Assembly (NCBI GenBank): GCA_043228905.1
Contig: JBHGNT010000013.1
Location: 18,166,001-18,230,000, forward strand
From: Azolla caroliniana
Lineage: Eukaryota; Plantae; Polypodiophyta
Reading direction: 5' to 3'
Length of the DNA: 64,000 nt
Made by a program: the position numbers and the translations under genes. Position 1 is the first letter of the stretch, and every line of letters begins with the position of its first letter. Below, piece after piece: positions 13,620 through 53,905 of the stretch. A model generated the notes under the pieces. It searched no databases. It was not told the origin of the DNA and saw only the letters and a list, made by a program, of their open reading frames with translations.

Positions 13620-14375
13620 GACTGTTGCAAGTGAGGGTTGCAATAGTCCCATTATTAAAAGACCCTCATATAAGGCATTACAACATATGAATAAGCCATT
13701 TCATGTTTCTGAAAGTGGTGCTATATGTGTGACTAGTGTTGGGATTACGGTCCCTTCTCATGGGATGGTCGGATATCGGAGATGAATGCCGACAAGCCCG
13801 GTTTCGGTTTCGGATCCGGATGACGAAGACCCCGGTTTCGGTACCGGATGACGAATGTACCCGGAGAGCGATCCGGATGCAGGGACATATCCGTGAATAT
13901 GTTCGCTATGGGCCCCTGAGGCTACAGTTGTAAATAGCCCAAAGTCATATAAGTATAAATATGACTTAGGGCAAACAGTGTTGTTGTTGCTTATCATTTT
14001 TCTGTTTTTCCACTCAAGAGGAGTGAAGAGGGAGCAGTCGTGAGACAGAGTGAGAGATAGAGCGCGAGAGAGGAAGAGGACGACGCCTCTGTGTATTTCC
14101 GCCGCCTGTGGCGAGGACAGCGAGCTCAAGGTCGTCGCCTTGGAGCTCGTCATTGTATACTTCTCTTGTATAGTGTTGTTTGGAGTCTTGTACTCCCGTG
14201 GTTTTTCCCATCTAGGGTTTTCCACGTTAATCCCTGTGTACTCGTGTGTTTCTCTCTTTTGGTTTCTATTTTCTGTTGCATTGATCCGCGATTACTCGGT
14301 TGTGGCCGAAAGGAAGAAGGTGAATCGAAGCGTTGATTCCCAACAAACTGGTATCAGAGCGAACTGCTGCAGAAA

Positions 14376-17300
14376 ATGGAAGGCGGCGGCAACGGGCAGC
14401 CGGGGATGATGGTGCTGAATGCGCAGAATTACGCTGACTGGAAGATCAAGATGGAGGATCTTCTGATTGTTCGGGACCTGTACGAACCGATTGACAGGTC
14501 GGAAATACCGAAGGGGGTACTTGAGTCGGAGTGGAAGCTCCTGAACCGGAAAGCCGTAGCGACGATCCGACAATATGTCGATGTAAGCGTCCTACAACAT
14601 GTGGCGAACGACACCAACGCATATGAGATGTGGAAGAAGCTGTCGGGCCTTTACGAGAGGAAGAATGCGTTGAACCGGACCTCCCTGATGAGGAAGATAG
14701 TGAACCTCAAGTACCGGGACGGCGAGAGTATGGTGGAACACGTAAGCACGTTCATGGGATTCGTGAATCAGCTTGCGGCGATCAAGTTCCCGTTGGAGGA
14801 TGCAATGCAAGCCATCATCCTGATGTGTACATTGCCGGAAAGCTGGGAGAACTTGGTGGTGACTCTCAGCACCTCCTGCACCGAAGATAACTTGTCCTTA
14901 CAAACGGTAAAGACAAGTATTTTGAATGAAGAAGCGCGTCGGAGAGATAAGGAACCGGCCTCCGACCCGAAGATGTTGTTTACCGAATCGGATCGGGGAA
15001 GACAATGGAACCGGAGTCCGCAAAGACGGGAGAAGTCGGGGACCCGGTCGCAGTCAAGAGGAAGGCCCACATGCTTCCACTGTGGGAAGACGGGGCACTT
15101 CCGAAAGAATTGTCGGCATTACCGAAAAGACAATGGAACCGACAACACCGATTCGAAGAAGTCACCGGAGAGAAACGGTGCATACCGGGGAGCCACGGAC
15201 CGGAATGGTTCGGATCGGCGAGGACAGGACCGGAAAGGAACAACGGCACTCGCGGCAAGTGAGGAAGAAATCATGCTCATCACCGAAGAAGGTGAGCTAA
15301 ACGTTGCCGGCGATGAGACGACCTGGGTGGTCGATTCCGGAGCATCGTTCCACCTGACCCCGGAGAGAAGATACTTCTCATCCTACACAGCCGGTGAGCA
15401 TGGCTGTGTTCGGATGGGAAATGAAGGTACGTGCCGGATTTCCGGCATAGGAGACGTGTGGTTGACAACCCCGACCGGATGCAAAATGCTGCTGAAGGAT
15501 GTCCGACACGTTCCGGAGGTTCGATTGAACCTGATTTCGGCCGGGAGGCTAGACGATGAAGGCTACACAGGTAGCATCCGGAACGGCGTAATGAAGTTCA
15601 GCAAGGGGAGCCTGATAGTGGCTCGGGCCCGGAAAGTCAACACACTGTACCTGATGAATGCCCGGTTATGTCCGGAAGAACTGAATGTGGCAGCCGACAC
15701 TGCCGGTGAGCTGTGGCACAAGAGACTGTGCCACATGAGTGAGAAGGGGATGAAGAGGCTTGCAGAAGACAACCTTATCCCAGTGAAGCATGTGCACCTG
15801 GAGAAGTGCACCGATTGCCTGGCCGGTAAGCAGAACCGAACCTCCTTCCACTCAAGGCCACCGACGAGACGGAGCGCACCATTGGAGTTGGTGCACACTG
15901 ATGTGTGTCAGGTAGAAACGAAGTCACATGGCGGAGCCCAGTACTTCGTAACATTCATTGATGATCACAGCCGGAAGCTGTGGACGGCACCGTTGAAGAC
16001 AAAGGACCAAGCGTTGTGCGTCTTCAAAGAACTCCACGCGAGAGTGGAAAGGGAATCCGGCAAGAAGCTGAAAGCGATACGAGCGGATAACGGAGGGGAA
16101 TACCGGGGGCAGTTCCAGGAGTACTGTCGCTCGAAGGGAATCCGACTCGAGTTTACTGTGCCGAAGACGCCGGAACTGAACGGGCTGGCTGAGAGGATGA
16201 ACCGGACCATAATGGAGCGGGTCCGGAGTATGCTGGCGCATGCGAAATTACCCAAGGGGTTTTGGGCTGAGGCAATGTCGACGGCGACATACGTGATAAA
16301 CAGATCACCCTCAGTACCTTTGGACGGAGACACGCCGCAGAAAGTGTGGACCGGTAAGGAAGTGTCCTACCGGCATCTGAAGGTGTTCGGGTGTCTCGCA
16401 TACGTGCATGTGGCAAAGGACCGGAGAGGAAAGCTAGATCCAAAGACCCGGCCATGCATATTCCTCGGTTACGGCGATGACGAGTTCGGCTACCGAGTAT
16501 GGGACCCGGTCGACAAGAAGATATTCAGGAGTCGAGACATCATCTTCATGGAGGACAAGACACTCGCCGACTGGGAGTCGGAGAAGAAGGTGAAGAGCTC
16601 CAAGTCGACCGGTGAGGATCAACTCTACAAGGAGCAGTCCCGACCGGCAAGGGACCGGTTAGCACTCGAGGATCCGGCCGAAGACGGTGAAGAAACAGAA
16701 CCGGCCGAAGAAGATGAAAACGATACCGGAACCGGCCCCGATCCCGAAATGGATTCGGATGAAGAAGAATCGGAAGAACCGGTTACCGAAGCTCCGGAAC
16801 GGAGATATCCTCTAAGAGAGAGAAGGGCCCCCCGGAGATTTCCGGAACCAGAGCACGTGCTGCTAACCGACGAGGGGGAGCCGGAGAGCTTTGAAGAAGC
16901 AAAACATGACACCCAGAGCCGCAGGTGGTTGAGTGCCATGCAGGACGAAATGGATTCCCTGCACGAGAACCACACATATGAACTTGTGGAGTTGCCGAAA
17001 GGAAAGCGGGCACTTCGAAACAAGTGGGTGTTCAAGCTGAAACCGGGAGATGCCGGAAACCCCCCGAGATACAAAGCCAGGATCGTGGTGAAGGGGTTTC
17101 AGCAGAAGAAGGGCGTCGACTTCGACGAGATATTTGCCCCGGTAGTGAAGATGACCTCCATCCGGACGGTGCTGAGCATAGCGGCAAGCATGGACCTCGA
17201 GGTAGAACAGATGGACGTGAAGACGGCATTCCTTCACGGTGACCTCGATCAAGAGATCTACATGCAGCAACCGGAAGGATTCGAGAAGAAAGGGAAGGAG

Positions 17301-17679
17301 CACCTGGTATGCCGGTTGAAGAAGAGCCTTTACGGACTGAAGCAGGCTCCCCGGCAATGGTACCGGAAGTTCGACTCCTTCATGACCGACGAAGGGTACC
17401 TCAAAACGCAGTCCGACCACTGCGTGTTTGTGAAGAAGTTCGAAGGAGGAGACTTTCTAATACTCCTCCTGTACGTGGACGACATGTTGATCGTCGGACG
17501 GGACCAGGTCAAGATACGGATGCTGAAGAAGGCTCTTCACCGAACCTTCTCAATGAAGGACCTGGGTTCGGCGAGGCAAATACTAGGGATGCACATCATC
17601 CGGGACCGGAAGAAGAAGCAGTTGTGGCTGTCACAGGAGAAGTACGTGACGAAGGTGCTTCACCGGTTCAACATGTCGG
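14376..17679 (+). CDS. Copia A gag-pol, 5' part (gag, CCHC knuckle, PR, IN, most of RT)
   Basis: Motifs CFHCGKTGHFRKNC, VVDSGAS, WHKRLCH, DNGGEY, YVDD; truncated by insertion of B. Confidence 0.95.
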
Positions 17680-20600
17680 TGTTGGGATTTCGGTCCCTCC
17701 GGATGGGATGTCCCTGGAGATAAATGACGGCAAGCCCGGTTGCGGTTACGGAACCGGATGATGAAGAGTACCCGGCATGAAGCCGGATGAAGTGTACCCG
17801 GATGCGGATCCGGATGATGAAGAGTACCCGGATACGGATCCGGATGATGAAGACCCCGGTTACGGAACCGGATGCTGAAGACCCCGACTACGGAGCCGGA
17901 TGACGAATGTACCCGGAGAGAGATCCGGATGCGGGGACATATTTGTGAATATGTTTGCCAAGGGCCCTTGAGGCTATATTTGTAAATAGCCCGAAAGTCA
18001 TATGTGTATAAATATGACTTAGGGCAAATAGTTTTTGGGTTGTTGCTTAATTTTCATGCGAAGTAAGGGCAGCCGCGAGAGAGAGAGAGAGAGACGAAGA
18101 GGTCGTTGCCTCTGTGTATTGCCGCCGCATGTGGCGAAGACAGTGAGCTCAAGGTTGTTGCCTTGTAGCTTCACCAGTGTACATCCCTGTTCATAGTGAT
18201 AGTTGGAGTTTGAGGACTCCCGTGGTTTTTCCCGTATAGGGTTTTCCACGTTAATCCCTGTGTATCGCATCTTTCTCTGTATTTCCTATTTTCTGCTGCA
18301 TTGATCCGCGATTACTCGGTTGTGGCCGAGTGGTGAAGGTGAATCCAAGCGTTGATTCTCGACAAACTGGTATCAGAGCGACTGTTGCAGAAAATGGAAG
18401 GCGGCGGCAGCGGGCAGCCGATGATGATGGTGCTGAATGCACAGAATTACGCCGACTGGAAGATCAAGATGGAGGACCTTCTGATTGTTCGGGACCTGTA
18501 CGAACCGATTGACAGGTCGGAAATACCGAAAGGTGTACTTGAGTCGGAGTGGAAGCTCCTGAACCGGAAAGCCGTAGCGACGATCCGACAATACGTCGAC
18601 GTGAGCGTCCTACAACATGTGGCAAACGACACCAACGCATATGAGATGTGGAAGAAGCTGTCGGGCCTCTACGAGAGGAAGAATGCGTTGAACCGGACCT
18701 CCCTGATGAGGAAGATCGTGAATCTCAAGTACCGGGACGGCGAGAGTATGGTGGAACACGTAAGCACGTTCATGGGATTCGTGAATCAGCTTGCGGCAAT
18801 CAAGTTCCCGTTGGAGGATGCAATGCAAGCCATCATCCTGATGTGTACATTGCCGGAAAGCTGGGAGAACTTGGTGGTGACTCTCAGCACCTCGTGCACC
18901 GAAGATAACTTGTCCTTACAAACGGTAAAGACAAGTATTCTGAATGAAGAAGCGCGTCGGAGAGATAAGGAACCGGCCTCCGACCCGAAGATGCTGTTTA
19001 CCGAATCGGATCGGGGAAGACAATGGAACCGGAGTCCGCAAAGACGGGAGAAGTCGGGGACCCGGTCGCAGTCAAGAGGAAGGCCCACATGCTTCCACTG
19101 TGGGAAGCCGGGGCACTTCCGAAAGAATTGTCGGCATTACCGAAAAGACAACGGAGCAGACGACACCGATTCGAAGAAGTCACCGGAGAGAAACGGTGCA
19201 TACCGGGGAGCCACGGACCGGAGAGGTTCGGATCGGCGAGGGCAGGACCGGAAAGGAACAACGGCACTCGCGGCAAGTGAGGAAGAAATCATGCTCATCA
19301 CCGAAGAAGGTGAGCTAAACGTTGCCGGCGATGAGACGACCTGGGTGGTCGATTCCGGAGCATCGTTCCACCTGACCCCGGAGAGAAGATACTTCTCATC
19401 CTACGCAGCCGGTGAGCATGGCTGTGTTCGGATGGGGAATGAAGGTACGTGCCGGATTGCCGGCATAGGAGATGTGTGGTTGACAACCCCGACCGGATGC
19501 AAAATGCTGCTGAAGGATGTCCGACACGTTCCGGAGGTTCGATTGAACCTGATTTCGGCCGGGAGGCTAGACGATGAAGGCTACACAGGTAGCATCCGGA
19601 ACGGCGTAATGAAGTTCAGCAAGGGGAGCCTGATAGTGGCTCGGGCCCGGAAAGACAACACACTGTACCTGATGAATGCCCGGTTATGTCCGGAAGAGCT
19701 GAATGTGGCAGCCGACACTGCCGGTGAGCTGTGGCACAAGAGACTGTGCCACATGAGTGAGAAGGGGATGAAGAGGCTTGCAGAAGACAACCTCATCCCA
19801 GTGAAGCATGTGCACCTGGAGAAGTGCACCGATTGCCTGGCCGGTAAGCAGAACCGAACCTCCTTCCACTCAAGGCCACCGACGAGACGTAGCGCACCAT
19901 TGGAGTTGGTGCATACTGATGTGTGTCAGGTAGAAACGAAGTCACATGGCGGAGCCCAGTACTTCGCGACATTCATTGATGACCACAGTCAGAAGCTGTG
20001 GACGGCACCGTTGAAGACAAAGGACCAAGTATTGTCCGTCTTCAAAGAACTCCACGCGAGAGTGGAAAGAGAATCCGGCAAGAAGCTGAAAGCGATACGA
20101 GCGGATAACGGAGGGGAATACCGGGGGCAGTTCCAGGAGTACTGTCGCTCGAAGGGAATCCGGCTCGAGTTTACTGTGCCGAAGACGCCGGAACTGAACG
20201 GGCTGGCCGAGAGGATGAACCGGACCATAATGGAGAGGGTCCGGAGTATGCTAGCGCATGCGAAATTACCCAAGGGATTTTGGGCTGAGGCAATGTCGAC
20301 GGCGACGTATGTGATAAATAGATCACCCTCAGTACCTTTGGACGGAGACACGCCGCAGAAAGTGTGGACCGGTAAGGAAGTGTCCTACCGGCATCTGAAG
20401 GTGTTCGGGTGTCTCGCATACGTGCATGTGGCAAAGGACCGGAGAGGAAAGTTAGATCCAAAGACCCGGCCATGCATATTCCTCGGTTACGGCGACGACG
20501 AGTTCGGCTACCGAGTATGGGACCCGGTCGACAAGAAGATATTCAGGAGTCGAGATATCATCTTCATGGAGGACAAGACACTCGCCGACTGGGAGTCGGA

Positions 20601-23162
20601 GAAGAAGGTGAAGAGCTCCAAGTCGACCGGTGAGGATCAACTCTACGAGGAGCAGTCCCGACCGGCTAGGGACCGGTTAGCACTCGAGGATCCGGCCGAA
20701 GACGGTGAAGAAACAGAACCGGCCGAAGAAGATGAAAACGATACCGGAACCGGCCCCGATCCCGAAATGGATTCGGATGAAGAAGAATCGGAAGAACCGG
20801 TTACCGAAGCTCCGGAACGGAGATATCCTCTAAGAGAGAGAAGAGCCCCCCGGAGATTTCCGGAACCTGAGCACGTGCTGCTAACCGACGAAGGGGAGCC
20901 GGAGAGCTTTGAAGAAGCAAAGCATGACACCCAGAGCCGCAGGTGGCTGAGTGCCATGCAGGACGAGATGGATTCCCTGCATGAGAACCACACATATGAA
21001 CTTGTGGAGTTGCCGAAAGGAAAGCGGGCACTTCGAAACAAGTGGGTGTTCAAGCTGAAACCGGGAGATGCCGAAAACCCCCCGAGATACAAAGCCAGGA
21101 TCGTGGTGAAGGGGTTTCAGCAGAAGAAGGGCGTCGACTTCGACGAGATATTTGCCCCGGTAGTGAAGATGACCTCCATCCGGACGGTGCTGAGCATAGC
21201 GGCAAGCATGGACCTCGAGGTAGAACAGATGGACATGAAGACGGCATTCCTTCACGGTGACCTCGATGAAGAGATCTACATGCAGCAACCGGAAGGATTC
21301 GAGAAGAAAGGGAAGGAGCACCTGGTATGCCGGTTGAAGAAGAGCCTTTACGGACTGAAGCAGGCTCCCCGGCAATGGTACCGAAAGTTCGACTCCTTCA
21401 TGACAGACGAAGGGTACCTCAAAACGCAGTCCGACCACGGCGTGTTTGTGAAGAAGTTCGAAGGAGGAGACTCTCTAATACTCCTCCTGTACGTGGACGA
21501 CATGTTGATCGTCGGACGGGACCAGGTCAAGATACGGATGCTGAAGAAGGCTCTTCACCGAACCTTCTCAATGAAGGACCTGGGTCCGGCGAGGCAAATA
21601 CTAGGGATGCACATCATCCGGAACCGGAAGAAGAAGCAGTTGTGGCTGTCACAGGAGAAGTACGTGACGAAGGTGCTTCACCGGTTCAACATGTCGGAAG
21701 CAAGACCGGTCGGATCGACCCTCCCGACAAACTGCAAGCTGTCCAACAAGCAAAGTCCCAAGACAAAGGCTGAAAAGGAGGATATGATGAAAGTGCCATA
21801 TGCCTCAGCCGTCGGGAGCTTGATGTACGCCATGGTGTGTACGAGACCGGACATCGGATATGCAGTCGGAGTGGTGAGCCGGTACATGAGCAATCCCGGC
21901 AAAGAGCATTGGAACGCGGCCAAGTGGATACTCCGATACCTGAAGGGCACGGCAAACGTGTGCCTCCGATTCGGCTCCGGTAAGCCCGAACTCGACGGCT
22001 TCACCGATTCGGATATGTCGGCTGATGCAGATACCAGCCGGTCCACATCAGGGTATGTGATGACGTATGCAGGGGGAGCCGTTTCGTGGCAGTCGAGGCT
22101 GCAGAAGACGGTTGCATTGTCAACCACGGAGGCGGAGTACATGGCGGCTGTTGAAGCCGGCAAGGAAATAATATGGATGAAGGACTTCATTAGAGAGCTC
22201 GGTATCCGGCAGGAGGAGTACCGACTCTACTGCGACAGTCAGAGTGCAATCCACCTTGCGAAGAACGCGGCCTATCACTCCCGGACGAAGCACATCCAGC
22301 GAAGATATCACTGGATCCGGGAAAGGATAGAAGACAAGGAGTTCGTGCTGACAAAGATCCACACGGACGAGAACGGGTCGGATATGCTGACCAAGGTCCT
22401 CACACCCGACAAGCTGGAAGCATGCCGGAAGAGGATCGGGTTGGAGAGACATCCCATGCCGAAGTGAAGGGGGAGTTTGTTGGGATTTCGGTCCCTCCGG
22501 ATGGGATGTCCCCGGAGATAAATGACGGCAAGCCCGGTTGCGGTTACGGAACCGGATGATGAAGAGTACCCGGCATGAAGCCGGATGAAGTGTACCCGGA
22601 TGCGGATCCGGATGATGAAGAGTACCCGGATACGGATCCGGATGATGAAGACCCCGGTTACGGAACCGGATGCTGAAGACCCCGACTACGGAGCCGGATG
22701 ACGAATGTACCCGGAGAGAGATCCGGATGCGGGGACATATTTGTGAATATGTTTGCCAAGGGCCCTTGAGGCTATATTTGTAAATAGCCCGAAAGTCATA
22801 TGTGTATAAATATGACTTAGGGCAAATAGTTTTTGGGTTGTTGCTTAATTTTCATGCGAAGTAAGGGCAGCCGCGAGAGAGAGAGAGAGAGACGAAGAGG
22901 TCGTTGCCTCTGTGTATTGCCGCCGCCTGTGGCGAAGACAGTGAGCTCAAGGTTGTTGCCTTGTAGCTTCACCAGTGTACATCCCTGTTCATAGTGATAG
23001 TTGGAGTTTGAGGACTCCCGTGGTTTTTCCCGTATAGGGTTTTCCACGTTAATCCCTGTGTATCGCATCTTTCTCTGTATTTCCTATTTTCTGCTGCATT
23101 GATCCGCGATTACTCGGTTGTGGCCGAGTGGTGAAGGTGAATCCAAGCGTTGATTCTCGACA
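17680..23162 (+). mobile_element. Ty1/copia element B, structurally intact and potentially autonomous
   Basis: 685-bp LTRs 17680-18364 and 22478-23162 (2 differences seen); TSD gtcgg (17675-17679, 23163-23167); iMet PBS 18368-18379; PPT before 22478. Confidence 0.98.
18394..22467 (+). CDS. Copia B gag-pol polyprotein, 1357 aa, uninterrupted
   Basis: ATG 15 nt after the PBS; gag, zinc knuckle, PR, IN, RT (YVDD) and RNase H (GFTDSD, STTEAEY) in one frame. Confidence 0.97.
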   Translation: MEGGGSGQPMMMVLNAQNYADWKIKMEDLLIVRDLYEPIDRSEIPKGVLESEWKLLNRKAVATIRQYVDVSVLQHVANDTNAYEMWKKLSGLYERKNALNRTSLMRKIVNLKYRDGESMVEHVSTFMGFVNQLAAIKFPLEDAMQAIILMCTLPESWENLVVTLSTSCTEDNLSLQTVKTSILNEEARRRDKEPASDPKMLFTESDRGRQWNRSPQRREKSGTRSQSRGRPTCFHCGKPGHFRKNCRHYRKDNGADDTDSKKSPERNGAYRGATDRRGSDRRGQDRKGTTALAASEEEIMLITEEGELNVAGDETTWVVDSGASFHLTPERRYFSSYAAGEHGCVRMGNEGTCRIAGIGDVWLTTPTGCKMLLKDVRHVPEVRLNLISAGRLDDEGYTGSIRNGVMKFSKGSLIVARARKDNTLYLMNARLCPEELNVAADTAGELWHKRLCHMSEKGMKRLAEDNLIPVKHVHLEKCTDCLAGKQNRTSFHSRPPTRRSAPLELVHTDVCQVETKSHGGAQYFATFIDDHSQKLWTAPLKTKDQVLSVFKELHARVERESGKKLKAIRADNGGEYRGQFQEYCRSKGIRLEFTVPKTPELNGLAERMNRTIMERVRSMLAHAKLPKGFWAEAMSTATYVINRSPSVPLDGDTPQKVWTGKEVSYRHLKVFGCLAYVHVAKDRRGKLDPKTRPCIFLGYGDDEFGYRVWDPVDKKIFRSRDIIFMEDKTLADWESEKKVKSSKSTGEDQLYEEQSRPARDRLALEDPAEDGEETEPAEEDENDTGTGPDPEMDSDEEESEEPVTEAPERRYPLRERRAPRRFPEPEHVLLTDEGEPESFEEAKHDTQSRRWLSAMQDEMDSLHENHTYELVELPKGKRALRNKWVFKLKPGDAENPPRYKARIVVKGFQQKKGVDFDEIFAPVVKMTSIRTVLSIAASMDLEVEQMDMKTAFLHGDLDEEIYMQQPEGFEKKGKEHLVCRLKKSLYGLKQAPRQWYRKFDSFMTDEGYLKTQSDHGVFVKKFEGGDSLILLLYVDDMLIVGRDQVKIRMLKKALHRTFSMKDLGPARQILGMHIIRNRKKKQLWLSQEKYVTKVLHRFNMSEARPVGSTLPTNCKLSNKQSPKTKAEKEDMMKVPYASAVGSLMYAMVCTRPDIGYAVGVVSRYMSNPGKEHWNAAKWILRYLKGTANVCLRFGSGKPELDGFTDSDMSADADTSRSTSGYVMTYAGGAVSWQSRLQKTVALSTTEAEYMAAVEAGKEIIWMKDFIRELGIRQEEYRLYCDSQSAIHLAKNAAYHSRTKHIQRRYHWIRERIEDKEFVLTKIHTDENGSDMLTKVLTPDKLEACRKRIGLERHPMPK

Positions 23163-23167
23163 GTCGG

Positions 23168-23937
23168 AAGCAAGACCGGTCGGATCGACCCTCCCGGCAA
23201 ACTGCAAGCTGTCCAGCAAGCAAAGTCCCAAGACAAAGGCTGAAAAGGAGGATATGATGAAAGTGCCGTATGCCTCAGCCGTCGGGAGCTTGATGTACGC
23301 CATGGTGTGTACGAGACCGGACATCGGATATGCAATCGGAGTGGTGAGCCGGTACATGAGCAATCCCGGCAAAGAGCATTGGAACGCGGCCAAGTGGATA
23401 CTCCGATACCTGAAGGGCACGGCAAACGTGTGCCTCCGATTCGGCTCCGGAAAGCCCGAACTCGACGGCTTTACCGATTCGGATATGTCGGCTGATGCAG
23501 ATACCAGCCGGTCCACATCAGGGTATGTGATGACGTATGCAGGGGGAGCTGTTTCATGGCAGTCGAGGCTGCAGAAGATGGTTGCGCTGTCAACCACGGA
23601 GGCGGAGTACATGGCGGCTGTTGAAGCCGGCAAGGAAATAATATGGATGAAGGACTTCATTAGAGAGCTCGGTATCCGACAGGAGGAGTACCGACTCTAC
23701 TGCGACAGTCAGAGTGCAATCCACCTTGCGAAGAACGCGGCCTATCACTCCCGGATGAAGCACATCCAGCGAAGATATCACTGGATCCGGGAAAGGATAG
23801 AAGACAAGGAGTTCGTGCTGACAAAGATCCACACGGACGAGAACGGGTCGGATATGCTGACCAAGGTCCTCACACCCGACAAGCTGGAAGCATGCCGGAA
23901 GAGGATCGGATTGGAGAGACATCCCATGCCGAAGTGA
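23168..23937 (+). CDS. Copia A gag-pol, 3' part (end of RT, RNase H)
   Basis: Rejoins 14376-17679 in frame to give 4074 nt, the same length as B. Confidence 0.95.
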
Positions 23938-24561
23938 AGGGGGAGTTTGTTGGGATTACGGTCCCTTCTCATGGGATGGTCGGATATCGGAGATGAATGC
24001 CGACAAGCCCGGTTTCGGTTTCGGATCCGGATGACGAAGACCCCGGTTTCGGTACCGGATGACGAATGTACCCGGAGAGCGATCCGGATGCAGGGACATA
24101 TCCGTGAATATGTTCGCTATGGGCCCCTGAGGCTACAGTTGTAAATAGCCCAAAGTCATATAAGTATAAATATGACTTAGGGCAAACAGTGTTGTTGTTG
24201 CTTATCATTTTTCTGTTTTTCCACTCAAGAGGAGTGAAGAGGGAGCAGCCGTGAGACAGAGTGAGAGATAGAGCGCGAGAGAGGAAGAGGACGACGCCTC
24301 TGTGTATTTCCGCCGCCTGTGGCGAGGACAGCGAGCTCAAGGTCGTCGCCTTGGAGCTCGTCATTGTATACTTCTCTTGTATAGTGTTGTTTGGAGTCTT
24401 GTACTCCCGTGGTTTTTCCCATCTAGGGTTTTCCACGTTAATCCCTGTGTACTCGTGTGTTTCTCTCTTTTGGTTTCTATTTTCTGCTGCATTGATCCGC
24501 GATTACTCGGTTGTGGCCGAAAGGAAGAAGGTGAATCGAAGCGTTGATTCCCAACAACTAG

Positions 24562-25428
24562 GATGTATGAATGCAAGAGGAACTTGAAAAAGAATGTTAA
24601 TTTGTTTCAGCAGGCATTGAAGGATAATGGAGTACTTGAAATGGAAGAGCAGATTGAAAGTGTTATGGAAGAAATTTCTTTTGCAAATACTTTAGAAGAG
24701 TTAGAAATGTATTTGAAAGAAGATGATGAGAGTGTTAGAAAGATACATGTAAACTCAATTGATATGTATTATGAGATTGATAGGTATAATTGTAAATATG
24801 AAGAAGTAGAAAGTTTATGTAATACAAAATACAAAACAATAGATAAAAAGGTCAAACCTGCTGCGGTACCATTACCTATTGGTAGTGAAGAGAAGATGGA
24901 GGCAGCAGCAACCGAGCCTATGCTTCGACCAATAGAGAAGATCGGACATCACTTCACTTTGGAGACAATAAATAACTTGAGAATCGGAGGGGGTGAATTT
25001 CTTCTGCAATCAGAGATCGCGACTTTCAAAGAAATGATCTTTAGGCATGGGAACACATTCACATTCAAAGCTGAGGAGATTGGTTGTGTAGATCCAAAGG
25101 TGGTGACGCCAATGGTAATATTTACTATCCCTCATATTCCTTGGAATTTTAAACCTATTGCAGTACCGAGAGCTCGATTACCTCATTTGTTGGGCCTGCT
25201 GAAGGATAAAGTCAAGATGAAGATTTTAGAGCCTTCAAATGCACCATACTCCAATAGATGGTTCACAGTTCCAAAGAAAGATGGTTCTCTAAGATTCATT
25301 CAAGATCGACAACCAGTCAACAAAGTCACAATTTGAAATGTAGGAATCAGATCAATCGTTGATGAGTTTGCGGAAGCGTTTGCTGGGAGAGCGATTTACT
25401 CTATGGGAGACATATTCAGGATACGACC
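24562..25428 (+). pseudogene. Phygy/Selgy-like pol, N-terminal RT part
   Basis: KYKTIDKKVKP, PSNAPYSNRWFTVPKKDGSLRFIQD; continues the 13540 frame after removing copia A. Confidence 0.9.
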
Positions 25429-25831: not shown

Positions 25832-26848
25832 ATGTCCGACTCAACTAGTGAGTTAGGCCAAATAATGGTAGCCTTACAACAACTACAACTTGAAAATGAA
25901 GCTCTTCGAAATTCTTTACAAGAACTTCAAGTCGGTACCTCCCTATCCTCACAACCCCCGAACCCTAGTCTCCCACAACAACCTAGCCTAGAGCCCGATC
26001 TTCTACCAACATCTAGCCTAGCTTCGTCACAGTTTCTTGAGCCTAAGGTTAGCCTCCCAGAAAAATTTGATGGAACGAGGTCGCGTTTCCGATGGTTCAT
26101 CAACCAAGTTCGACTTATCATTCGGCTACAACCTCAACGTTATGGAGATGGTCTTCGACAAGTCAGCCTTGTGGGCACCCTTCTCTCCGGTCCGGCCCAA
26201 GCTTGGTTTGCACCATTGGTAGAAACCTCATCACCTTTGTTGGAGGACTTTCCCGCCTTCCTTGTCGAGTTAGAGGCCACATTTGGAGAGACGGACCGAC
26301 GACGTACAACTCTTAACAAGATTTATGCACTCGAACAAGGTTCACGTGCAGCTTCGGTCTATGCTTCCGAATTTCGACAACTAGCATGCGACGTCAATTG
26401 GGATGATCAAGCTTTAGCTGATCACTTTCAGCGCGGTCTTCGAAGCAATGTCAAGAATCTTCTCTTAAACTTTCCGGAGCCCACCTCGTTATCCCAAGCG
26501 ATTTCACAAGCAGTCCATTGTGACAATCGTCTTTTCGAATTTTGCCAAGAAGAGCGTCGGACTTGGGTTCCACCTCATTCACTTCCACGCCACGCCCCGG
26601 TCATACAACCCCAAGCATCCTCACACTCGCCTACTTCGGCAGATGCTCCTGACCCCATGGAAATTGATCAAGCCCGATTTCGGCCATTGACTGATGCTGA
26701 ACGACAATTTCGGCGGGCTAATGGCTTGTGCATGTATTGCGGTGCCTCCGGTAATGTCGTTCGCCATTGTCCTAGGAGTACTCGCCCACAATTCCATCGA
26801 GCTAACGGACCCCAACATCCGGAAAACGACATCGTTCGGTTGCAGTAG
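25832..26848 (+). CDS. Tcn1-like gag, 338 aa
   Basis: PEKFDG, QGSRAASVYASEF, DPMEID, LCMYCG..C (knuckle His lost). Confidence 0.92.
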   Translation: MSDSTSELGQIMVALQQLQLENEALRNSLQELQVGTSLSSQPPNPSLPQQPSLEPDLLPTSSLASSQFLEPKVSLPEKFDGTRSRFRWFINQVRLIIRLQPQRYGDGLRQVSLVGTLLSGPAQAWFAPLVETSSPLLEDFPAFLVELEATFGETDRRRTTLNKIYALEQGSRAASVYASEFRQLACDVNWDDQALADHFQRGLRSNVKNLLLNFPEPTSLSQAISQAVHCDNRLFEFCQEERRTWVPPHSLPRHAPVIQPQASSHSPTSADAPDPMEIDQARFRPLTDAERQFRRANGLCMYCGASGNVVRHCPRSTRPQFHRANGPQHPENDIVRLQ

Positions 26849-29800
26849 GAGCCATGCAACTGGACATCTCCCGTCGCCCACATTCTCTTGGTTCTATTGC
26901 CGGATCATCAGGCAATTTCACATTGAAGGTATGGCTTTCGTTTAACTCTAGTTCCATTCAGTCTGTTGCTTTACTTGATTCTGGGGCATCTTCTTGCTTC
27001 ATCGACATCGCATTTGCCCAAGCACATGGCGTACCTGTCGTTGGCCTCTCAAAACCCATTCCAGTTGAAGCCATCGACGGGTGCATCCTCTCGTCAAGTG
27101 CAATTACTCAAGTTACAATCCCATTAGGGCTTCGGGTGGGCTCACACCAAGAGGAGCTCACCTTTTACCTCATCGCATCTCCTCGACATCCGATCGTCTT
27201 AGGACTAACGTGGTTGGAGGTGCACAATCCAATAGTGGATTGGTGCAACCGCTCGATCACATTTAGCAAGCCAAGATGCTCGTGCAAAAGTATGAAGGTA
27301 AATTCAGTTTCTTATCCTTCGGAGACGGTCGACTCCGAATTGACTACCCCATCATCCATCTAGTATGGGTTTGTTTGTGGTGCCATTTCTAACACACTCC
27401 ATGTTATTCCCGAAAAATACCAACACTTCTCCGACGTATTTGAAAAATGTAATGCTGGTCGGTTGCCTGAACACCGGCTCTACAACTGTCTGATTGATCT
27501 TCAAGAAGGTGTGTGTCCACCCTTTGGTCCTCTATATGCGTTGTCTGCACCAGAGTTGAAGGCCCTTCGTGTGTATCTCGATGAGAACCTCGAGAAAGGC
27601 TTTATTCAACCTTCTAAGTCACCAGCCAGGGCCCCCATTTTATTTGTGAAGAAGGACGGCTCTCTACGCTTATGCGTCGACTACCGAGGTCTCAACAAAC
27701 TCACTGTGCGCAACCACTATCCGCTACCTCTGATCCCCGAACTCCTTGATCGGCTCCGAGTTGCACGTGTCTTCTCCAAAGTTGATCTGCGTGGAGCGTA
27801 CAATCTAGTACGCATCAAACCGGGGGATGAATGGAAAACCACATTTCGAACACGGTATGGGCATTTCGAATACAAGGTAATGCCTTTTGGTCTTAGTAAC
27901 GCTCCCGCAGTTTTTCAACATATGATGAACGATATTTTCCGGGAATATCTTGATCTTTTTGTTGTCATTTACCTCGATGATATTCTCATTTTCTTGCCAA
28001 ACATGGAGGAGCACACTTGCCAAGTCCGATTAGTTCTTGCCAAACTTCACGAGCATGGCCTTTATGCCAAAGGCGAGAAATGCGAGTTCGACCGTACCTC
28101 GATCGAATTTCTGGGCTACATCATCTCGCCCACTGGCATCACCATGGATATGAAGAAGGTCTCTGTCATTCAGGCGTGGGCGACTCCAAGGCGACTTAAA
28201 GATGTGCAATTCTTCCTCGGCTTCGCGAATTTTTACCGTCATTTCATCAAGGGGTTTTCCACCCTAGCACAACCTCTTATCGCTCTCACCCATAAAGGCA
28301 CTGCATTTTTATGGACCTCGGAGGCACAAAATGCGTTCGACTCACTCAAACACGCATTCATCACTGGCCCGGTGCTGCTACATGCCGACCCCACAAAACC
28401 CTTCCAAGTCGAAACCTATGCCTCTGACTTTGCCATTGGCGCCATCTTATCCCAAGCAGACGACAACAACCTAATGCACCCAATGGCTTACTATTCCCGA
28501 AAATTTACGGCATCCGAAAACAATTATCCCATTTACGACAAGGAGCTTGCTGCTATCATTGCTGTCTTTGAAGAATGGCGACCCTACTTGGCCGGCGCAC
28601 AACATCGTGTCCAGGTAGTGACTGATCATAAAAATTTAGTTTATTTTTCCACCACTCGTACTTTGAATCGAAGGCAGGCCCGTTGGTCGACATTTCTCGC
28701 CGACTACGATTTTGAGATCGTATTTCGACCTGGTGGCCAACATGGGAAGGCTGATGCCCTTTCTCGCCGAGCTGACCTTGCACTCCGCCCTGGGGATGTT
28801 GCTCATGCTCAACAATCTAGACGTTTGTTGAAACCCGACCAATTGCATTTGTTTGCCACTTGTATGTTGCAGGATGATTCTTTACTCCAACAAATCACTG
28901 ATGCATCCAAGACCGATGCGTTCGCCAACGAGATTCGAGATAGTCTGCAAAACCCCTCCAAGGCGACCAAAAGGAAGGATCTTGACACCTTCACCATACA
29001 AGAGGGTTTTTTGTTCCGAGATCATCTCTTATACGTCCCAGAGGGCCCATGTCGCACTCGGGTGTTGCGGGAATGCCACGATGAACCACTTGCAGGTCAT
29101 TTCGGGGTCGCGAAAACCCTCGAGCTAATCTCTCGGGGGTATTGGTGGCCACAACCATGGAAGCTGGTCAAAGAATACATAAAGAGTTGTGAGGTTTGTG
29201 CTCGCTCCAAAGCCATTCATCATCGGCCATACGGCTTACTACAGCCGCTTCCATGTCCTCGTCGTCCTTGGGCCTCTATCTCTATGGACTTGATAACTAA
29301 TCTACCCTTGGTCAATAGCTATGACTCGGTGTTGGTCGTTGTCGATCGGTTTACGAAGATGGCTCACTTCACTCCATGCTCCAAAACCATTTCCGGAGAA
29401 GGAATGGTGCAACTCCTACTCAACAATGTAGTACGCTTGCATGGACTCCCCGATGATGTCATCTCGGATCGCGGACCCCAGTTTGTCTCTCACTTCTAGC
29501 AGCGCCTGCTACAAACTTTAGGCATCTCTGTCAAGTTGTCCTCCGCTTATCACCCCCAAACTGACGGGCAAACGGAGCGTGTCAACCAAATCCTTGAGCA
29601 GTATCTTCGGTGCTCGGTTAGTTACCAACAAGATGATTGGGTCAACTTACTTTCGCTCGCGGAATTCGCCTACAATAATTCTCTCCATGCATCGACTGGT
29701 GTCACTCCCTTCTTTGCCAACTACGGTTTACATCCTCGCTTCAACATTTCCCTTCCTACCACTTCCGTGAACCCTTCGGCGGAGGATCGCGCCCGCATTT

Positions 29801-30402
29801 TGGAAGAAGTACATCATGATTTATCCTTGGAGCTTAGTCTTGCTAGTGAACGATACAAGAAGCAGGCTGATCGCCATCGATCTTCCACTCCACACTTTGT
29901 CATTGGAGACATGGTCTGGTTTTTACGTCGACACATCTCTACTACTCGTCCATGTGCGAAACTTGATTACAAGAAGTTGGGACCATTCCGTATCATCGAG
30001 TGCATCAATCCCGTCGCCTTCCGGCTCGCCCTTCCATCCCACTTCTGGATTCACGATGTTTTTCATGTCTCCCTCCTCGAACCCCATTATGCTTCACAAC
30101 TCCCAGGACGTCAAGCCCCACCACCACCACCACCTGTGCAATTAACGACAAGGGAGGAATACGAGGTCGACCAAATCCTTGACTCGCGTTGGCACCGTTG
30201 ACACTTGCAATACCTCGTCCTATGGAGGGGTTACCCCATGTCTGAGGCCACATGGGAACCATCGGCAAATTTACAAAATGCCCCAGAGGTCGTCCAAGAT
30301 TTTCATCACCGATATCCCCACAAACCAGCGGCCGATTTGGGAAGGCGGCGTAAGAGGGGGGATAATATCAAGATTCGAACTCTTGACACGACCCTGTTAT
30401 AA
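26821..30402 (+). pseudogene. Tcn1-like pol (PR-RT-RH-IN-chromodomain), in the -1 frame relative to gag
   Basis: LLDSGAS, YLDD, HHCC/DDE integrase, GPF motif, EYEVDQILDS..YLVLWRGY..ATWEP; in-frame stops at 27361, 29497 and 30199. Confidence 0.93.
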
Positions 30403-30723: not shown

Positions 30724-32869
30724 AATTTCAACTAGCAATTGATAGTCGCAATATCACAACAATGAAAACACCAATTGGGTTGGTTCGAATGTGCACTCTA
30801 CCTCAAGGTGCAACAAATTCAGTTGCTCATATGATGAATGCAATGAACAAGGTTCTACATGAGTACATCCCAAAGGTAAATATGCCATTTTTTGATGATA
30901 TTTCTATTAAGGGATGCTTAGAAAGAGAGAAAGATGAGACTATGGTTGGAAATGGTTGCAGAAAGTTTGTGATGGATCACATTAATGATTGTGAAAGTAT
31001 TTTAAATAAGCTTGAGCAGGTACATTTGACACTATCAAGAACAAAGTCTAGCTTTGGGCAAAACGAAGTTCTCATAGTTGGTCATATGTGTGGGTGGTAT
31101 GGGAGGAAGCCTTCACCAATCAAAATTAACGCAATACAAAATATGAAGGAAGTTTGTGACTCGGTAACAGAGGTGAGAAGATTTTTGGGTGCATGTGTGT
31201 TTTATCATATTTGGTTACCACACTTTGCACATGTCTCAGATCCTCTCTACCAACTTTTAAGAAAAGGGAAGAAGTTTATTTGGACTGATGAACATACACA
31301 AGTTGTTCAACAGCTGAAAGAAGCATTATTGAAAGCACCAGTTCTTTGTCAACTAGACTGCAAAGGTGAACGACCAATTATAGAAATAGTTGATACTAGC
31401 CCAATCGGGATCGGTTGGGTTATCAACCAAGAAGATGAAGACCAACATCGGTATGCGATCAGTTTTGGAGCAAAGATATTAAATGAAAGACAAAGAAACT
31501 ATGCACAAGTTAAACGAGAATTGTGGGGTTTGCTTATTGCATTAAAAACAGATAGAGATTACTTGATCGGAGCAAATGTAGTGGTTGAAACAGATTGTTT
31601 GCCACTCATCGGAATGGTAGCAAGTTGCATGACACCAGATATTGCAATGCTTCGGTGGATTGCATACATCAGAACCATGAACCCAGAATTGCGGCATATA
31701 AAGGGAAAAGACAACCCAGTTGCAGATATGCTGTCAAGGGCAAGGTTCATAAATGAAAAGGTGATGCAAACTGAAGATAAGAATTGGGAAACTAAAAGCC
31801 ATCGAGTTGCTCATCAAATATCTAGTAAGCCTCATGACGAGTTTAATGTAAGCATAATGTTCAAAGACTTGTGGAAACTTGTGAAATATGTCAAAGGTAT
31901 TCAACTATTCGATATCGAGATGAGCTAAACCCAAAATATTCATCATCAATGCATAATAAGTGGATGGTTGATCTAGTGACAATGCCACTTGGGGAAGGTC
32001 AAATGCGATATTTAGTACTAGCAAGAGAAGACCTTACAAACCAAGTAGAAGGAAGACCACTACGACAAAAAACAACTAGAGCTATATGTAAACTTTTGTT
32101 AGAAGATGTAATATGTCGTTATGGGTGTGTTGGTAAAATAATTGCAGATAGAGGAGAATTGGACTCTGATGAACCTAGAGAATTCTTCAGGCCAATTGGG
32201 GTCAAATTATCGCTTACAACTGCATATAATCCAGAAGCCAATGGAAAGACTGAAAGAGGACATAACCCAATAGTTAAGGCGATCGTGAAAAGTTTTAAAG
32301 GTAAAATAAGAGATTGGCCACGCATGCTACCTTATGCACTATGGGCGGATCAAACAACTCATAGTTCGGTAACACGATACATGCCAACTGAATTGATACT
32401 TGGCCAAAAGCCCATCATGCCGGTAGAAGAATCAATTATGTCATGGATATCTATTCTATGGATAGAAGAGGTGAGCAGAGAAGAATTACTTGCTTTGTGA
32501 ATTCAACAATTAGAGCGTTGACCTGAAGATATAGAAATAGCAGCCCAACGATTGAAGGAGGCTCGACTGAAGAATAAAATTTGTTTTGATAAAACTCATA
32601 GAATTTGACCTAAGAAAATAGAAGAAGGAGATTGGGTGCTCGTGTATGATAACAGTTTAGATAATCAACATAGCACCATCCGCAAGTTCATTGAAAGATG
32701 GTTTGAGCCTTATATAGTAAGAAAAGTATATGATAACTTTACTTATAAGCTTAGTGAATTGGATGGGACACTAATCCTAAACGTGGTAGCTGGAAAGAGG
32801 AATAAATTATTTAAGAAAAGGTTTGAGCTTGAACCTCCTCCAATAGATCAACATGAAGATGAAAGATAG
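30724..32869 (+). pseudogene. Phygy/Selgy-like pol remainder (RT, RNase H, integrase)
   Basis: LPQGATNS, PFFDD, VETDCLPL, IIADRGE, AYNPEANGKTERG; frameshift or deletion near 31870 and several stops. Confidence 0.92.
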
Positions 32870-44824: not shown

Positions 44825-46483
44825 ATGTTCAATTTGATCTATTCTCGCATCGATTCTACTTGCAAAGGGAAGAATTCATCGTCGGATCATCGTCCCCGCA
44901 AAGCTGGACAGGCATCTTCATCGAAGACGCAGGAGTATAGCCATTACTTATATGACACCCTCCGAATCCTGGTGGTCGGGCGATCGGGTGCAGGCAAGAC
45001 CACCCTCATCCGGCTCCTGGTCGGCAATGGCGGCCCCCGAAAGCTTGGCACGGATGCAGTCGCCGGCCGTCAGAACATCGAAAAAGAATGGCGAATCCTC
45101 GAGAAGGAGGGTCTTCCGCAGCTCGTCTTCCACGACAGCAATGGGATGGGTGTACGCGGCGGCGAGAGCCTGGCCGAAGTGAAGAATTTCATCGATTCAC
45201 GGAACAAGGATTCAAGCCATGTACCAGATAGAATCCACCTGATCTGGTACATCATCAGTGCAGCCGATAACCGGTTCGCAGACGATGGCGGCCTTATGCG
45301 TGTGGTGTTGGAGAGCAATATTCCCGTGCTACTCATCATGACCTACAATGATCTCGGGGAGGAAATCTGCAAGCAACATGTCACAGACCACAATTTAGAC
45401 TTGCTTCTCGAATCCAATGTGGACAAGAACAAGAGATCGGAGATCAAACGGCAGATGGTGCGGATCGGTAACAAAGTGAGGATCAATAACAAAACGGGAG
45501 AAATAACTGGGAAACCAGACATTGGAGGGCTGTGCAACGTGTCGAAGCAGACGGAGATGCTTCTGCACAAGGCCGCCAAGTTCACATGGATCGCAGCGCA
45601 AGAGGTAGACATATCCACCAAGATTCATGCGACCACGACGTTGATTATGCGAATGACCAAGGCAGCTCTTATTGGGAAGGTATTCACGTTGTCCATGGAT
45701 TCCATGGTCCTCGTCGCCGTGTTCCGCACCTTGGAGAAGAACATCTGCAAGCTATGGAGGGTTCCCAAGGAGCTCCGGAAGGCGTTGTCGACCATGTATT
45801 TTCGTAACGAAGGATATCGGCTGCTTCTTAACGAGGTGAGGCATGACATTGAGAAGCTAATCGGAGTGTTGAGTGCTCTCATAGTGTTGGTGGTGTGTGC
45901 TGCCACCAGCCTTCCGGTACCATTACAACCACTTCTTGCATCCGTCGCTGGCGCATTACGTCTCGGATCGAAACCTTCGAGAAACAGTCCCAATGAGCAG
46001 CTCCTTCACAAGACGACCATCCTCGTCATCACATACGCGCTACATCTCCTCTTGGCCATCCTCTTCATGAAGGCGCAGCAATGGATTAAGATGAAAGCAG
46101 GCCAAGGCCAAGGGCAGCACCAGATCCAGCTCCTGCATGAGCCATGGGATCCGGCACTCACAGAAAACCATTACAAGAGGCTGTGTGAAGAGTTCTTGAA
46201 GAATATGGAGACAGACTTCCCTGTTTTAGAACAAGGTAGTTGTAGTAGTGGTGATGGTGGGACGGCCATTAGCTCCACATGGGACGTCATGTTTAGATCG
46301 GATGCCGTGGCTCGCTTGGTCAACAACTTTGCCGTGAAGCAATATAGGATGTACTTGCGGAATGCCCATGGTAACACGAGACCCACAAACAACCAGGTAC
46401 CACTCCTCATTCTTCTTCTTCTTCTACCACTACTACTACTACTACTAACTTGTCGAGACCAGCGGGTTACATCGCTGATATGA
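44825..46483 (+). CDS. Uncharacterised TRAFAC-class P-loop GTPase (MMR_HSR1/septin-like G domain) with a hydrophobic helical C-terminal half, 552 aa
   Basis: G1 ILVVGRSGAGKTT, G3 VFHDSNG, RIHLIWYII strand, G4-like LIMTYND; hydrophobic segments LIGVLSALIVLVVCA and ILVITYALHLLLAILF; long ORF more GC-rich than its flanks. Confidence 0.88.
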   Translation: MFNLIYSRIDSTCKGKNSSSDHRPRKAGQASSSKTQEYSHYLYDTLRILVVGRSGAGKTTLIRLLVGNGGPRKLGTDAVAGRQNIEKEWRILEKEGLPQLVFHDSNGMGVRGGESLAEVKNFIDSRNKDSSHVPDRIHLIWYIISAADNRFADDGGLMRVVLESNIPVLLIMTYNDLGEEICKQHVTDHNLDLLLESNVDKNKRSEIKRQMVRIGNKVRINNKTGEITGKPDIGGLCNVSKQTEMLLHKAAKFTWIAAQEVDISTKIHATTTLIMRMTKAALIGKVFTLSMDSMVLVAVFRTLEKNICKLWRVPKELRKALSTMYFRNEGYRLLLNEVRHDIEKLIGVLSALIVLVVCAATSLPVPLQPLLASVAGALRLGSKPSRNSPNEQLLHKTTILVITYALHLLLAILFMKAQQWIKMKAGQGQGQHQIQLLHEPWDPALTENHYKRLCEEFLKNMETDFPVLEQGSCSSGDGGTAISSTWDVMFRSDAVARLVNNFAVKQYRMYLRNAHGNTRPTNNQVPLLILLLLLPLLLLLLTCRDQRVTSLI

Positions 46484-53378: not shown

Positions 53379-53628
53379 ACCGCATGCCTGGCCAGTAAGC
53401 AGAACCAAACCTCCTTCCGATCAAGGCCACCGATGAGACATAATGCACCACTGGAGTTGGTGCATACTGATGTGTGTCAAGTGGACATGAAGTCACATGC
53501 CGGACCGATTGCCTGGCCAGTGAGCAGAACCAAACCTCCTTCCGATCAAGGCCACCGATGAGACATAATGCACCACTGGAGTTGGTGCATACTAATGTGT
53601 GTCAAGTGGACATGAAGTCACATGCCGA
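53379..53628. repeat. 125-bp tandem duplication in the copia D integrase
   Basis: accg..tgcctggccagt.agcagaaccaaacc...aagtcacatgccg starts at 53379 and 53504. Confidence 0.92.
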
Positions 53629-53905
53629 AACGCAGTACTTCGTGACGTTCATAGATGACCACAACCGAAAGCTGTGGGCCACACCGCTGAAGACGAAGGA
53701 TCAGGTGTTATTCGTCTTGAAGGAGCTCCACGTGAGAGTGGAAAGAGAAACCAGCCGAAAGCTCAAGGCGGTTCGAGCAGATAACGGAGGAGAATACCGG
53801 AGGTAGTTCAAGGAGTACTGTCGCTCGAATGGAATCCGGCTCGAATTTACCATGCCGAAGACGCCGAAACTAAACGGGTTGGCCGAGAGGATGAACCAGA
53901 CCATA

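Follow-up and report, generated by a model that had tools for sequence, protein, structure and literature searches.

The 64,000-nucleotide stretch of the Azolla caroliniana genome analysed here (assembly GCA_043228905.1, contig JBHGNT010000013.1, positions 18,166,001 to 18,230,000 of the forward strand; hereafter the window) carries two nested Ty1/copia retrotransposons, elements A and B, that are overprinted with the tetranucleotide CCGG. This overprinting is real, strong and clade-specific, it is apparently selected, and the fern Copia lineage that carries it is very successful. With roughly even confidence, we propose that one Ty1/copia clade inherits its CCGG load as part of its design and that this load is under selection in active elements. 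The range 14376-23937, which covers most of A and all of B, contains 172 CCGG, 32 GGCC, 15 CGCG and 8 GCGC.

Two nested Ty1/copia elements

A sequence-only reading of the window had assigned 14376-23937 to a Copia family. The Copia assignment is correct; the range is, however, not a single element but comprises two nested Ty1/copia elements, delimited as follows by self-BLAST and junction reads of long terminal repeats (LTRs) and target-site duplications (TSDs).

13737-24556, plus strand: element A, the outer Ty1/copia element, interrupted by B
13732-13736 and 24557-24561: TSD of A, ACTAG
13737-14345 (5') and 23948-24556 (3'), plus strand: LTRs of A, 99.7% alike
14376-17679, plus strand: coding sequence of A, part 1 (gag, protease, integrase and part of the reverse transcriptase (RT), by Pfam)
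23168-23937, plus strand: coding sequence of A, part 2
17680-23162, plus strand: element B, a related Copia element nested in the RT region of A, which is split at 17679/17680
17675-17679 and 23163-23167: TSD of B, GTCGG
17680-18364 and 22478-23162: LTRs of B, 99.7% alike
18394-22467, plus strand: coding sequence of B, an open gag-pol of 1357 amino acids

Once B and one copy of its TSD are removed, the gag-pol of A is also open and also 1357 amino acids long. The Pfam domains follow the Copia order within a single polyprotein, i.e. Retrotran_gag_2, zf-CCHC, Pol_BBD, gag_pre-integrs, rve, SH3_retrovirus and RVT_2. The primer-binding site (PBS) adjoining the 5' LTR is TGGTATCAGAGC, which we take to be the complement of the initiator methionine tRNA, and a purine run, GAAGGGGGAG, lies just 5' of the 3' LTR with three bases between them. 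Thus, the elements have the direct LTRs bounded by TG..CA, 5-bp TSDs, PBS and purine tract of Ty1/copia elements. A and B are ~98% identical in their coding sequences, while their LTRs are only ~80% identical.

CCGG is in excess of protein, codon usage and dinucleotide content

In A and B together, 184 CCGG were observed, compared with 53.4 expected from base composition, 59.7 from a first-order Markov model and 151.8 from a second-order Markov model. The coding sequence of B contains 71, distributed over all three codon phases (22 as CCG-G, 16 as nCC-GGn and 33 as nnC-CGG), while the expectations for this sequence across nulls were 22, 41.5 and 53.6. In a synonymous-codon shuffle, in which codons are swapped among equal residues so that protein and codon usage are kept (CpG 307 vs 310), 41.5±3.9 CCGG are expected (z 7.5), and, of the tetramers scored, CCGG deviates the most, the runner-up having a z of 4.2. 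In a third-position shuffle, which keeps protein, codon usage and all dinucleotides and in which phase 0 is fixed by construction, 53.6±3.4 are expected (z 5.1) and the highest of 1000 shuffles reached 65. The open reading frame (ORF) of A at 14376-17720 contains 62 CCGG compared with 37.4±3.9 expected. These codon-shuffled and dinucleotide-preserving nulls had been called for in the sequence-only reading, and its claim that CCGG is not an amino-acid requirement stands, as it does for codon usage: all three phases are used and the excess survives every shuffle.

The local counts given in that reading were largely reproduced. In 19021-19560, we counted 15 CCGG rather than the reported 16, and 2 GGCC, 1 CGCG and 0 GCGC as reported; 20581-20880 contains the reported 11 CCGG. 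The two controls, 27601-28140 and 44941-45480, contain 2 and 3 CCGG as reported, with a GC content of 0.47 and 0.54, respectively, compared with 0.58 in 19021-19560.

Of the 145 places at which the protein encoded by B permits a CCGG, 71 are filled (76%, 67% and 36% by phase), compared with 2% of the permitted places for CCGC and 3% for GCGC; 'saturated' is, therefore, a fair word for the CCGG load of B. In the same coding sequence, GGCC occurs 14 times compared with 18.2 expected, and GCGC and CGCG are short, as are CTGG (z -2.9) and CAG (z -4.7).

That codon usage, amino-acid composition or richness in CpG/GC produced the excess as an artefact is extremely improbable. The element is rich in GC and CpG, and CCG for proline (37/59) and CGG for arginine (45/110) are preferred codons in B, in which CTG is the commonest leucine codon; however, the excess remains when protein, codon usage and all dinucleotides are held, the GC- or CpG-rich Copia controls L021, L034 and L016 show no CCGG excess or a deficit (z -2.2 in L021, a GC-rich distant Copia element), and the non-coding arrays in the U3 region of the LTRs carry CCGG too. 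Three shuffles ruled out an artefact of codons, amino acids or dinucleotides.

After CCGG, A is preferred (54%) and G is avoided (7%). A longer motif around CCGG was considered and rejected; the flanks are not reverse-complement symmetric, and coding plus avoidance of GGG can account for them. On the sense strand of 18394-22464, CAG occurs 53 times compared with 77.7 expected, and TGG and GGG are also under-represented. The complement CTG is on neither the list of over-represented nor that of under-represented words of B and, thus, the CAG deficit is strand-specific. It may reflect avoidance of splice-acceptor-like sites.

The bias is restricted to one clade

Closer kin were obtained from a scan of metagenome contigs, the tree was built over the integrase-RT region, and comparisons were made pairwise. 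A and B form one clade with L008, L014 and L026 (Shimodaira-Hasegawa-like approximate likelihood ratio test (SH-aLRT) 99), characterised by a GC content of 0.51-0.55, an observed/expected ratio of CpG (CpG O/E) of ~1 and a threefold CCGG excess. In L008, the protein of which is 79% identical to that of B, CCGG is again the top tetramer (59 vs 31.8; z 7.5). The sister clade, L001 and L009-L013 (SH-aLRT 100), was found partly in the same ENA sample series as the CCGG-rich clade; its members have open frames, a GC content of 0.43 and a CpG O/E of 0.5, and the z for CCGG in L009 and L001 is 0.6-1.2. Relatives that are 54-70% identical in protein, drawn from angiosperm genomes and metagenomes, have a GC content of 0.40-0.43, a CpG O/E of 0.2-0.6 and 2-12 CCGG. 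The fern/metagenome clade is sister to angiosperm TNT 1-94-like sequences (SH-aLRT 100 for the joint clade, in a tree without a reference set of named Copia lineages). This distribution indicates that the CCGG trait originated on a single branch and was then kept over a long divergence.

Four related organisms carry the family at very high abundance; in the contigs of four runs with four organism labels, its pieces number tens of thousands. Among the differences listed between B and the bulk of the copies in these runs, the 36 best supported leave every CCGG of B untouched.

Within the window, the following features allow the bias to be followed outside A and B.

51349-55129, plus strand: old relative D, 5' part; 79-85% nucleotide identity to B, still CCGG-rich
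62246-63642, plus strand: old relative D, 3' part of the coding region
53906-54552, plus strand: solo LTR of a related Copia element inside D, with ACCATA flanking both sides
55130-62245, minus strand: Ty3/gypsy chromovirus, inserted in D, used as a control
25832-30198, plus strand: Ty3/gypsy element, used as a control

D is broken by the solo LTR and the young chromovirus, and the motif persists in it as claimed from the letters alone: 54950-55090 contains 6 CCGG in 141 bp. The chromovirus encodes capsid, protease, RT, RNase H, integrase and chromodomain. With LTRs (55130-55603 and 61772-62245) that are 99.8% alike, it is as young as A and B. Its target in D reads GTGCCGG; integration specific to CCGG was considered and rejected, the TSD, GTGCC, being an ordinary one of 5 bp that happens to overlap a CCGG. 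Only 6 CCGG are present among the 234 CG of the chromovirus. In the other Ty3/gypsy element (26000-30000; GC content 0.49, CpG O/E 0.95), there are 13 CCGG compared with 13.5 expected, and the window background has 18 among 748 CG with a CpG O/E of 0.58. Altogether, a bias of the kind expected from host-wide mutation or repair was not found: the two gypsy elements, the background and the R/U5 parts of the LTRs lack it.

The gypsy element at 26000-30000 is rich in TCGA (34 compared with 15-19 from base or dinucleotide content; 34.9 from a second-order Markov model). The favoured word of the form YCGR (Y, pyrimidine; R, purine) may differ between families.

Inside the LTRs, CCGG is confined to one part

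In the LTRs of A, B and D and in the solo LTR, all CCGG lie within the 5' part of U3, where they are grouped into arrays of paired sites. In the 5' LTR of A, all six are at 13799-13877, while the 21 CG of 13991-14346 include no CCGG; in the solo LTR in D, all ten are inside the first 215 bp. The LTR of B is divided as follows.

17697-17930, plus strand: U3 array of B, 14 CCGG in ~230 bp, a 28-bp tandem unit present 6.6 times; copy in the 3' LTR at 22495-22728
17936-18364, plus strand: core promoter, R and U5 of the LTR of B, 19 CG and 0 CCGG

Thus, in the promoter/R/U5 parts of the LTRs of A and B, 0 of 40 CG are CCGG. Because these parts evolve fastest and yet are free of the bias, a mutation process acting on DNA or an error bias of the RT is disfavoured.

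In 17743-17931 and 22541-22729, the U3 CCGG occur as pairs 11-12 bp apart, the inner bases of which are complementary and vary between units, e.g. CCGGAT..ATCCGG, CCGGTT..AACCGG and CCGGC..GCCGG. Such pairs could be hairpins or palindromic binding sites. A member of the sister clade has in its U3 (L009:5029-5300) an inverted-repeat array of CTCGGC...GCCGAG rather than CCGG pairs.

CCGG sites are conserved in open-frame lineages and decay normally in broken copies

B and L008 have 40 filled places in common compared with 23 expected if these were independent (p 8e-12). Moreover, synonymous third positions are conserved in 83-92% of cases inside CCGG, the highest value of any class, compared with 63-72% in other CG (p ~0.001) and 75-79% at other G/C. 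Decay was measured in pairwise comparisons as the proportion of CG sites at which a transition separates the two sequences (CG vs TG/CA), and Fisher p values compare CCGG with CpG that have neither flank.

Open-frame pairs (B, L008, L062): CCGG 5.6%, one C/G flank 13.0%, neither flank 31.6%; p 7e-12
Frame-broken pairs of the same clade and similar identity: CCGG 19.0%, one flank 19.7%, neither flank 22.6%; p 0.24

Because broken copies lose the CpG of CCGG at the ordinary rate while open lineages keep it, purifying selection rather than low mutability is indicated, and these comparisons suggest that the CCGG load is kept by purifying selection on the nucleotide sequence in active elements. The LTR pairs of A and B tell the same of mutability. 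They differ at four positions in total, 14038/24249 and 14276/24487 in A and 17715/22513 and 18129/22927 in B, and three of these are C/T differences, i.e. one CCGG to CTGG, one CCG to TCG and one CTG to TTG. The difference at 17715/22513 (CCCTGG vs CCCCGG) bears out the caveat in the sequence-only reading that CCGG in the LTRs are not immune to change. Since such differences are expected from methylation-driven deamination, the copies A and B look ordinarily methylated and mutable.

Only 37 of the 71 CCGG of B could be encoded by the protein of the sister clade; the remainder are at K>R, Q>R and changes to P, and the replacements at these sites yield Arg, Pro, Gly or Ala. From the sister clade to B, Arg rises from 5.3-6.4% to 8.0%, the permitted places rise from 90-104 to 145, the GC content at third codon positions (GC3) rises from ~0.40 to 0.69, and the glycine, alanine, arginine and proline (GARP) amino acids rise from 20-22% to 25.6%. 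The pattern of replacements indicates that the pressure for CCGG extends to the protein sequence.

The changes in GC3 and GARP are also typical of directional pressure, and a lineage-restricted mutation or fixation bias has to be weighed here, e.g. GC-biased gene conversion between the thousands of coding regions that are nearly identical, together with flank-dependent CpG loss or T:G repair that passively pushes CG into C_G flanks and depletes CTGG and CCAG. The extreme abundance of the family makes ectopic conversion plausible, CTGG and CAG are short while CCGG is in excess, trinucleotide content covers most of that excess, and a preference for YCGR over RCGY is widespread. However, broken copies lose the CpG of CCGG as quickly as other CpG, the fastest-evolving parts of the LTRs are free of the bias, and it is absent from the equally young gypsy elements, from the background and from the sister clade. 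Moreover, GC-biased conversion would not be expected to spare GCGC, CGCG and GGCC, and an RT error bias should affect R/U5 too. Taken together, we regard a mutation or fixation bias of this kind as improbable, though it deserves to be kept in view.

Possible recognition of CCGG by a sequence-specific factor

Only CCGG is favoured; GGCC, GCGC and CGCG, which are equally self-complementary and GC-rich, are not, and the reader of the motif is, thus, likely a sequence-specific factor. We suggest, tentatively, that a putative protein recognises the CpG-centred CCGG on the DNA of the element, in the coding body and in the paired U3 arrays; such a factor would help the element to stay expressed or to replicate. 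This is akin to the docking-site idea of the sequence-only reading, which accords with the evidence for selection and is the strongest of the interpretations that are left. The one-palindrome specificity, the paired U3 arrays and the even spacing in the coding region (39 gaps of 21-60 bp compared with 28.8 for random permitted places; P ~0.002) point to recognition, and protein recognition on the DNA of the element is the mechanism that we infer to be the most likely, although our confidence in this step falls short of even. An accessory ORF with a family hit was not found beside gag-pol in an ORF and Pfam survey of the element, which makes a factor of the element's own, similar to VANC of the VANDAL transposons, unlikely. 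In its fullest form, this proposal holds that a polyprotein gene is overprinted, in all frames and with fairly even spacing, with ~70 protein-read CCGG sites that active elements need, that the putative reader is a host factor that responds to the CpG state, or Gag or integrase of the element itself, and that its role is to resist silencing or to replicate; in this complete form, the proposal is possible but doubtful.

Several points weigh against selection and recognition as set out here. Because 152 of the 184 CCGG in A and B are expected from the second-order Markov model, the signal is mostly one of trinucleotides, with CCG and CGG in excess and GCG and CGC short, and the pressured unit may be CCG/CGG rather than the tetramer. 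The CG of A and B are preceded by C in 41% and followed by G in 47% of cases, and 53% are YCGR while 11% are RCGY; yet YCGR exceeds RCGY in all sequences tested, with ratios of 1.3-7. The contrast between open and broken frames comes from three open-frame sequences and from low-coverage metagenome contigs, the host of which is unverified; the pairs overlap and are not independent, and their divergence mixes change in the master lineage with post-insertion change. Conservation at equilibrium could also reflect a strong fixation bias toward CCGG. The bins in which the spacing was scored were picked after viewing the data. In the CCGG-rich lineage L062, the 1 kb upstream, an LTR part, is devoid of CCGG; the coding load is, therefore, separable from the U3 array. 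Finally, the CCGG-reading factor is hypothetical at present.

A role at the level of RNA would also account for some of these features: the tetramer could structure the genomic RNA, pair the two packaged RNAs or act, at scattered positions, as packaging signals that Gag reads. Folding predictions give the coding RNA an advantage in stability of 5.5 kcal/mol per 240 nt over synonymous shuffles (z -4.9), with 82% of CCGG bases predicted to be paired compared with 66% of other G/C; the inner bases of the U3 pairs are complementary; and CCGG is missing from the R/U5 leader, where mispairing would hurt. However, a surplus of any GC palindrome would automatically add stability, complementarity between neighbouring coding-region CCGG is not extended (mean extension 1.00 vs 0.99 in the null), and GGCC, GCGC and CGCG would pair equally well or better, yet are not enriched. 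We consider a role in RNA unlikely. Of the more specific versions, local hairpins closed by CCGG in the coding region were rejected, none being present beyond chance, as was generic selection for RNA stability, which leaves the unfavoured GGCC, GCGC and CGCG unexplained.

CCGG does not reduce the targets of methylation

The sequence-only reading had proposed that the family enriches a methylation-poor context, weakly methylated CCG, and so weakens CHG/H3K9 silencing or dodges deamination (H, any base but G). The premise that CCG is weakly methylated is consistent with our data. The outer C of CCG shows C/T differences less often than the C of CWG (W, A or T), i.e. 7.2% vs 12.5% in pairs within the clade and 11% vs 21% between B and D, in agreement with methylation at CCG 20-50% below that at CWG in four angiosperms (PMC5221884). 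Moreover, CCG makes up 54% of the CHG-context cytosines in the CCGG-rich clade compared with 21% in the sister clade. The proposal built on this premise is not supported. The density of CWG cytosines is unchanged (56/kb in the clade vs 55-58/kb in the sister clade), while that of CG cytosines is tripled (133-150/kb vs 46-47/kb); CTG, itself a CWG, is the commonest leucine codon; and the CpG of CCGG decays normally in the LTR pairs and in broken copies, equal decay, as in the latter (19.0% vs 22.6%), having been named in the sequence-only reading among the outcomes that speak against evasion. Methylation at CG is largely context-independent in the angiosperms studied, in which weak methylation is confined to the outer C of CCG (PMC5221884), and CCG/CCGG flanks are preferred by mammalian DNMT1 and DNMT3B, with TCCGTA ranking 2/256 for DNMT1 and HpaII sites being of high and HhaI sites of low efficiency for DNMT3B (PMC7381644, PMC2936528). 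Altogether, we judge evasion of methylation by CCG enrichment to be highly unlikely.

Related candidates were tried and rejected. Evasion in the CHG context fails on the unchanged density of CWG. A choice of flanks that would let CG avoid maintenance or de novo methylation is contradicted by the mammalian enzymology, which points in the opposite direction, and an RCGY preference of Dnmt3 is not borne out in the study consulted. Codon optimisation against translation-linked silencing would not create a tetramer bias, and this silencing is reported to be independent of codon usage (PMC8892269).

Other features of the window

Directly after the 3' LTR of A, an ORF of 257 amino acids at 24563-25336 has no Pfam hit. 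Just downstream of the gypsy control at 25832-30198, an ORF at 30762-31928 encodes a gypsy-type RT/RNase H fragment. In the chromovirus, 61041-61327 consists of three overlapping 121-nt copies with an 83-bp start-to-start distance, upstream of the gag side, and 61354-61546 contains a pair of 75-nt repeats 118 bp apart; the 1-kb bin 61001-62000 contains 10 GGCC.

Implications

If active elements need these sites, then synonymous and even non-synonymous positions of the gene are under strong selection for a short DNA or RNA word rather than for the protein, in a family that abounds in several ferns. Should a protein read the sites, the gene would at the same time be a dense array of its binding sites, and this selection would steer the choice of amino acids. 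If true, this would provide a handle on the success of a retrotransposon lineage in a giant plant genome, and the CCGG reader could be fished out with simple probes. In these species, most of the signal from methods that sample CCGG (HpaII/MspI digestion, methylation-sensitive amplification polymorphism (MSAP) and reduced-representation bisulfite sequencing) would come from this family. A published description of such a CCGG bias in a retrotransposon was not found in keyword searches of open-access text.

Comparison with known systems

By structure, A and B resemble Tnt1/Tork-type plant Ty1/copia elements, with which they share the domain order, the PBS TGGTATCAGAGC, the 5-bp TSD, LTRs bounded by TG..CA and tandem repeats in U3; in the tree, angiosperm TNT1-like sequences branch off next outside the clade, and protein matches are titled 'Pol polyprotein from transposon TNT 1-94'. 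By contrast, the angiosperm and other relatives of this type have a GC content of 0.37-0.45, a CpG O/E of 0.1-0.6 and 0-6 CCGG per coding sequence, compared with 0.55, 1.0 and 71 in B.

VANDAL21, a DNA transposon, codes for VANC, a factor of its own, and the motifs lie mainly outside coding DNA. As in VANDAL21, a short motif occurs many times over one transposable-element family, and its copies are proposed docking sites that bear on the epigenetic state, an analogy also drawn in the sequence-only reading. However, the Copia elements encode gag-pol only, with no element-encoded, motif-binding anti-silencing protein found, and the 4-bp motif is overprinted on coding DNA.

In very-short-patch repair of E. 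coli, the Dcm site CCWGG is in excess and its deamination products are depleted, and this repair acts genome-wide. Similarly, a methylation-type palindrome is over-represented in A and B and its C-to-T products CTGG and CCAG are under-represented; the Copia bias is, by contrast, limited to the coding and U3 sequences of one clade, and broken copies are unprotected. A and B also resemble CpG islands in having a GC content of at least 0.5 and a CpG O/E of ~1 over kilobases in a CpG-depleted genome (background 0.58), but their CpG are in one favoured flank context, GCGC and CGCG are nearly absent, and the post-insertion changes look like methylation-driven deamination.

Single-stranded RNA viruses have dispersed packaging signals. 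These are similar to the CCGG sites in being a short motif that recurs along coding RNA in every frame and at fairly even intervals, while the coding CCGG sites lack conserved local stem-loops. Finally, an ONSEN-like 'stealth' retrotransposon is poor in methylation targets, whereas the depletion of CG and CWG that defines it is absent here, CG cytosines being at 150 vs 46/kb and CWG cytosines at 56 vs 55-58/kb in comparison with the sister clade.

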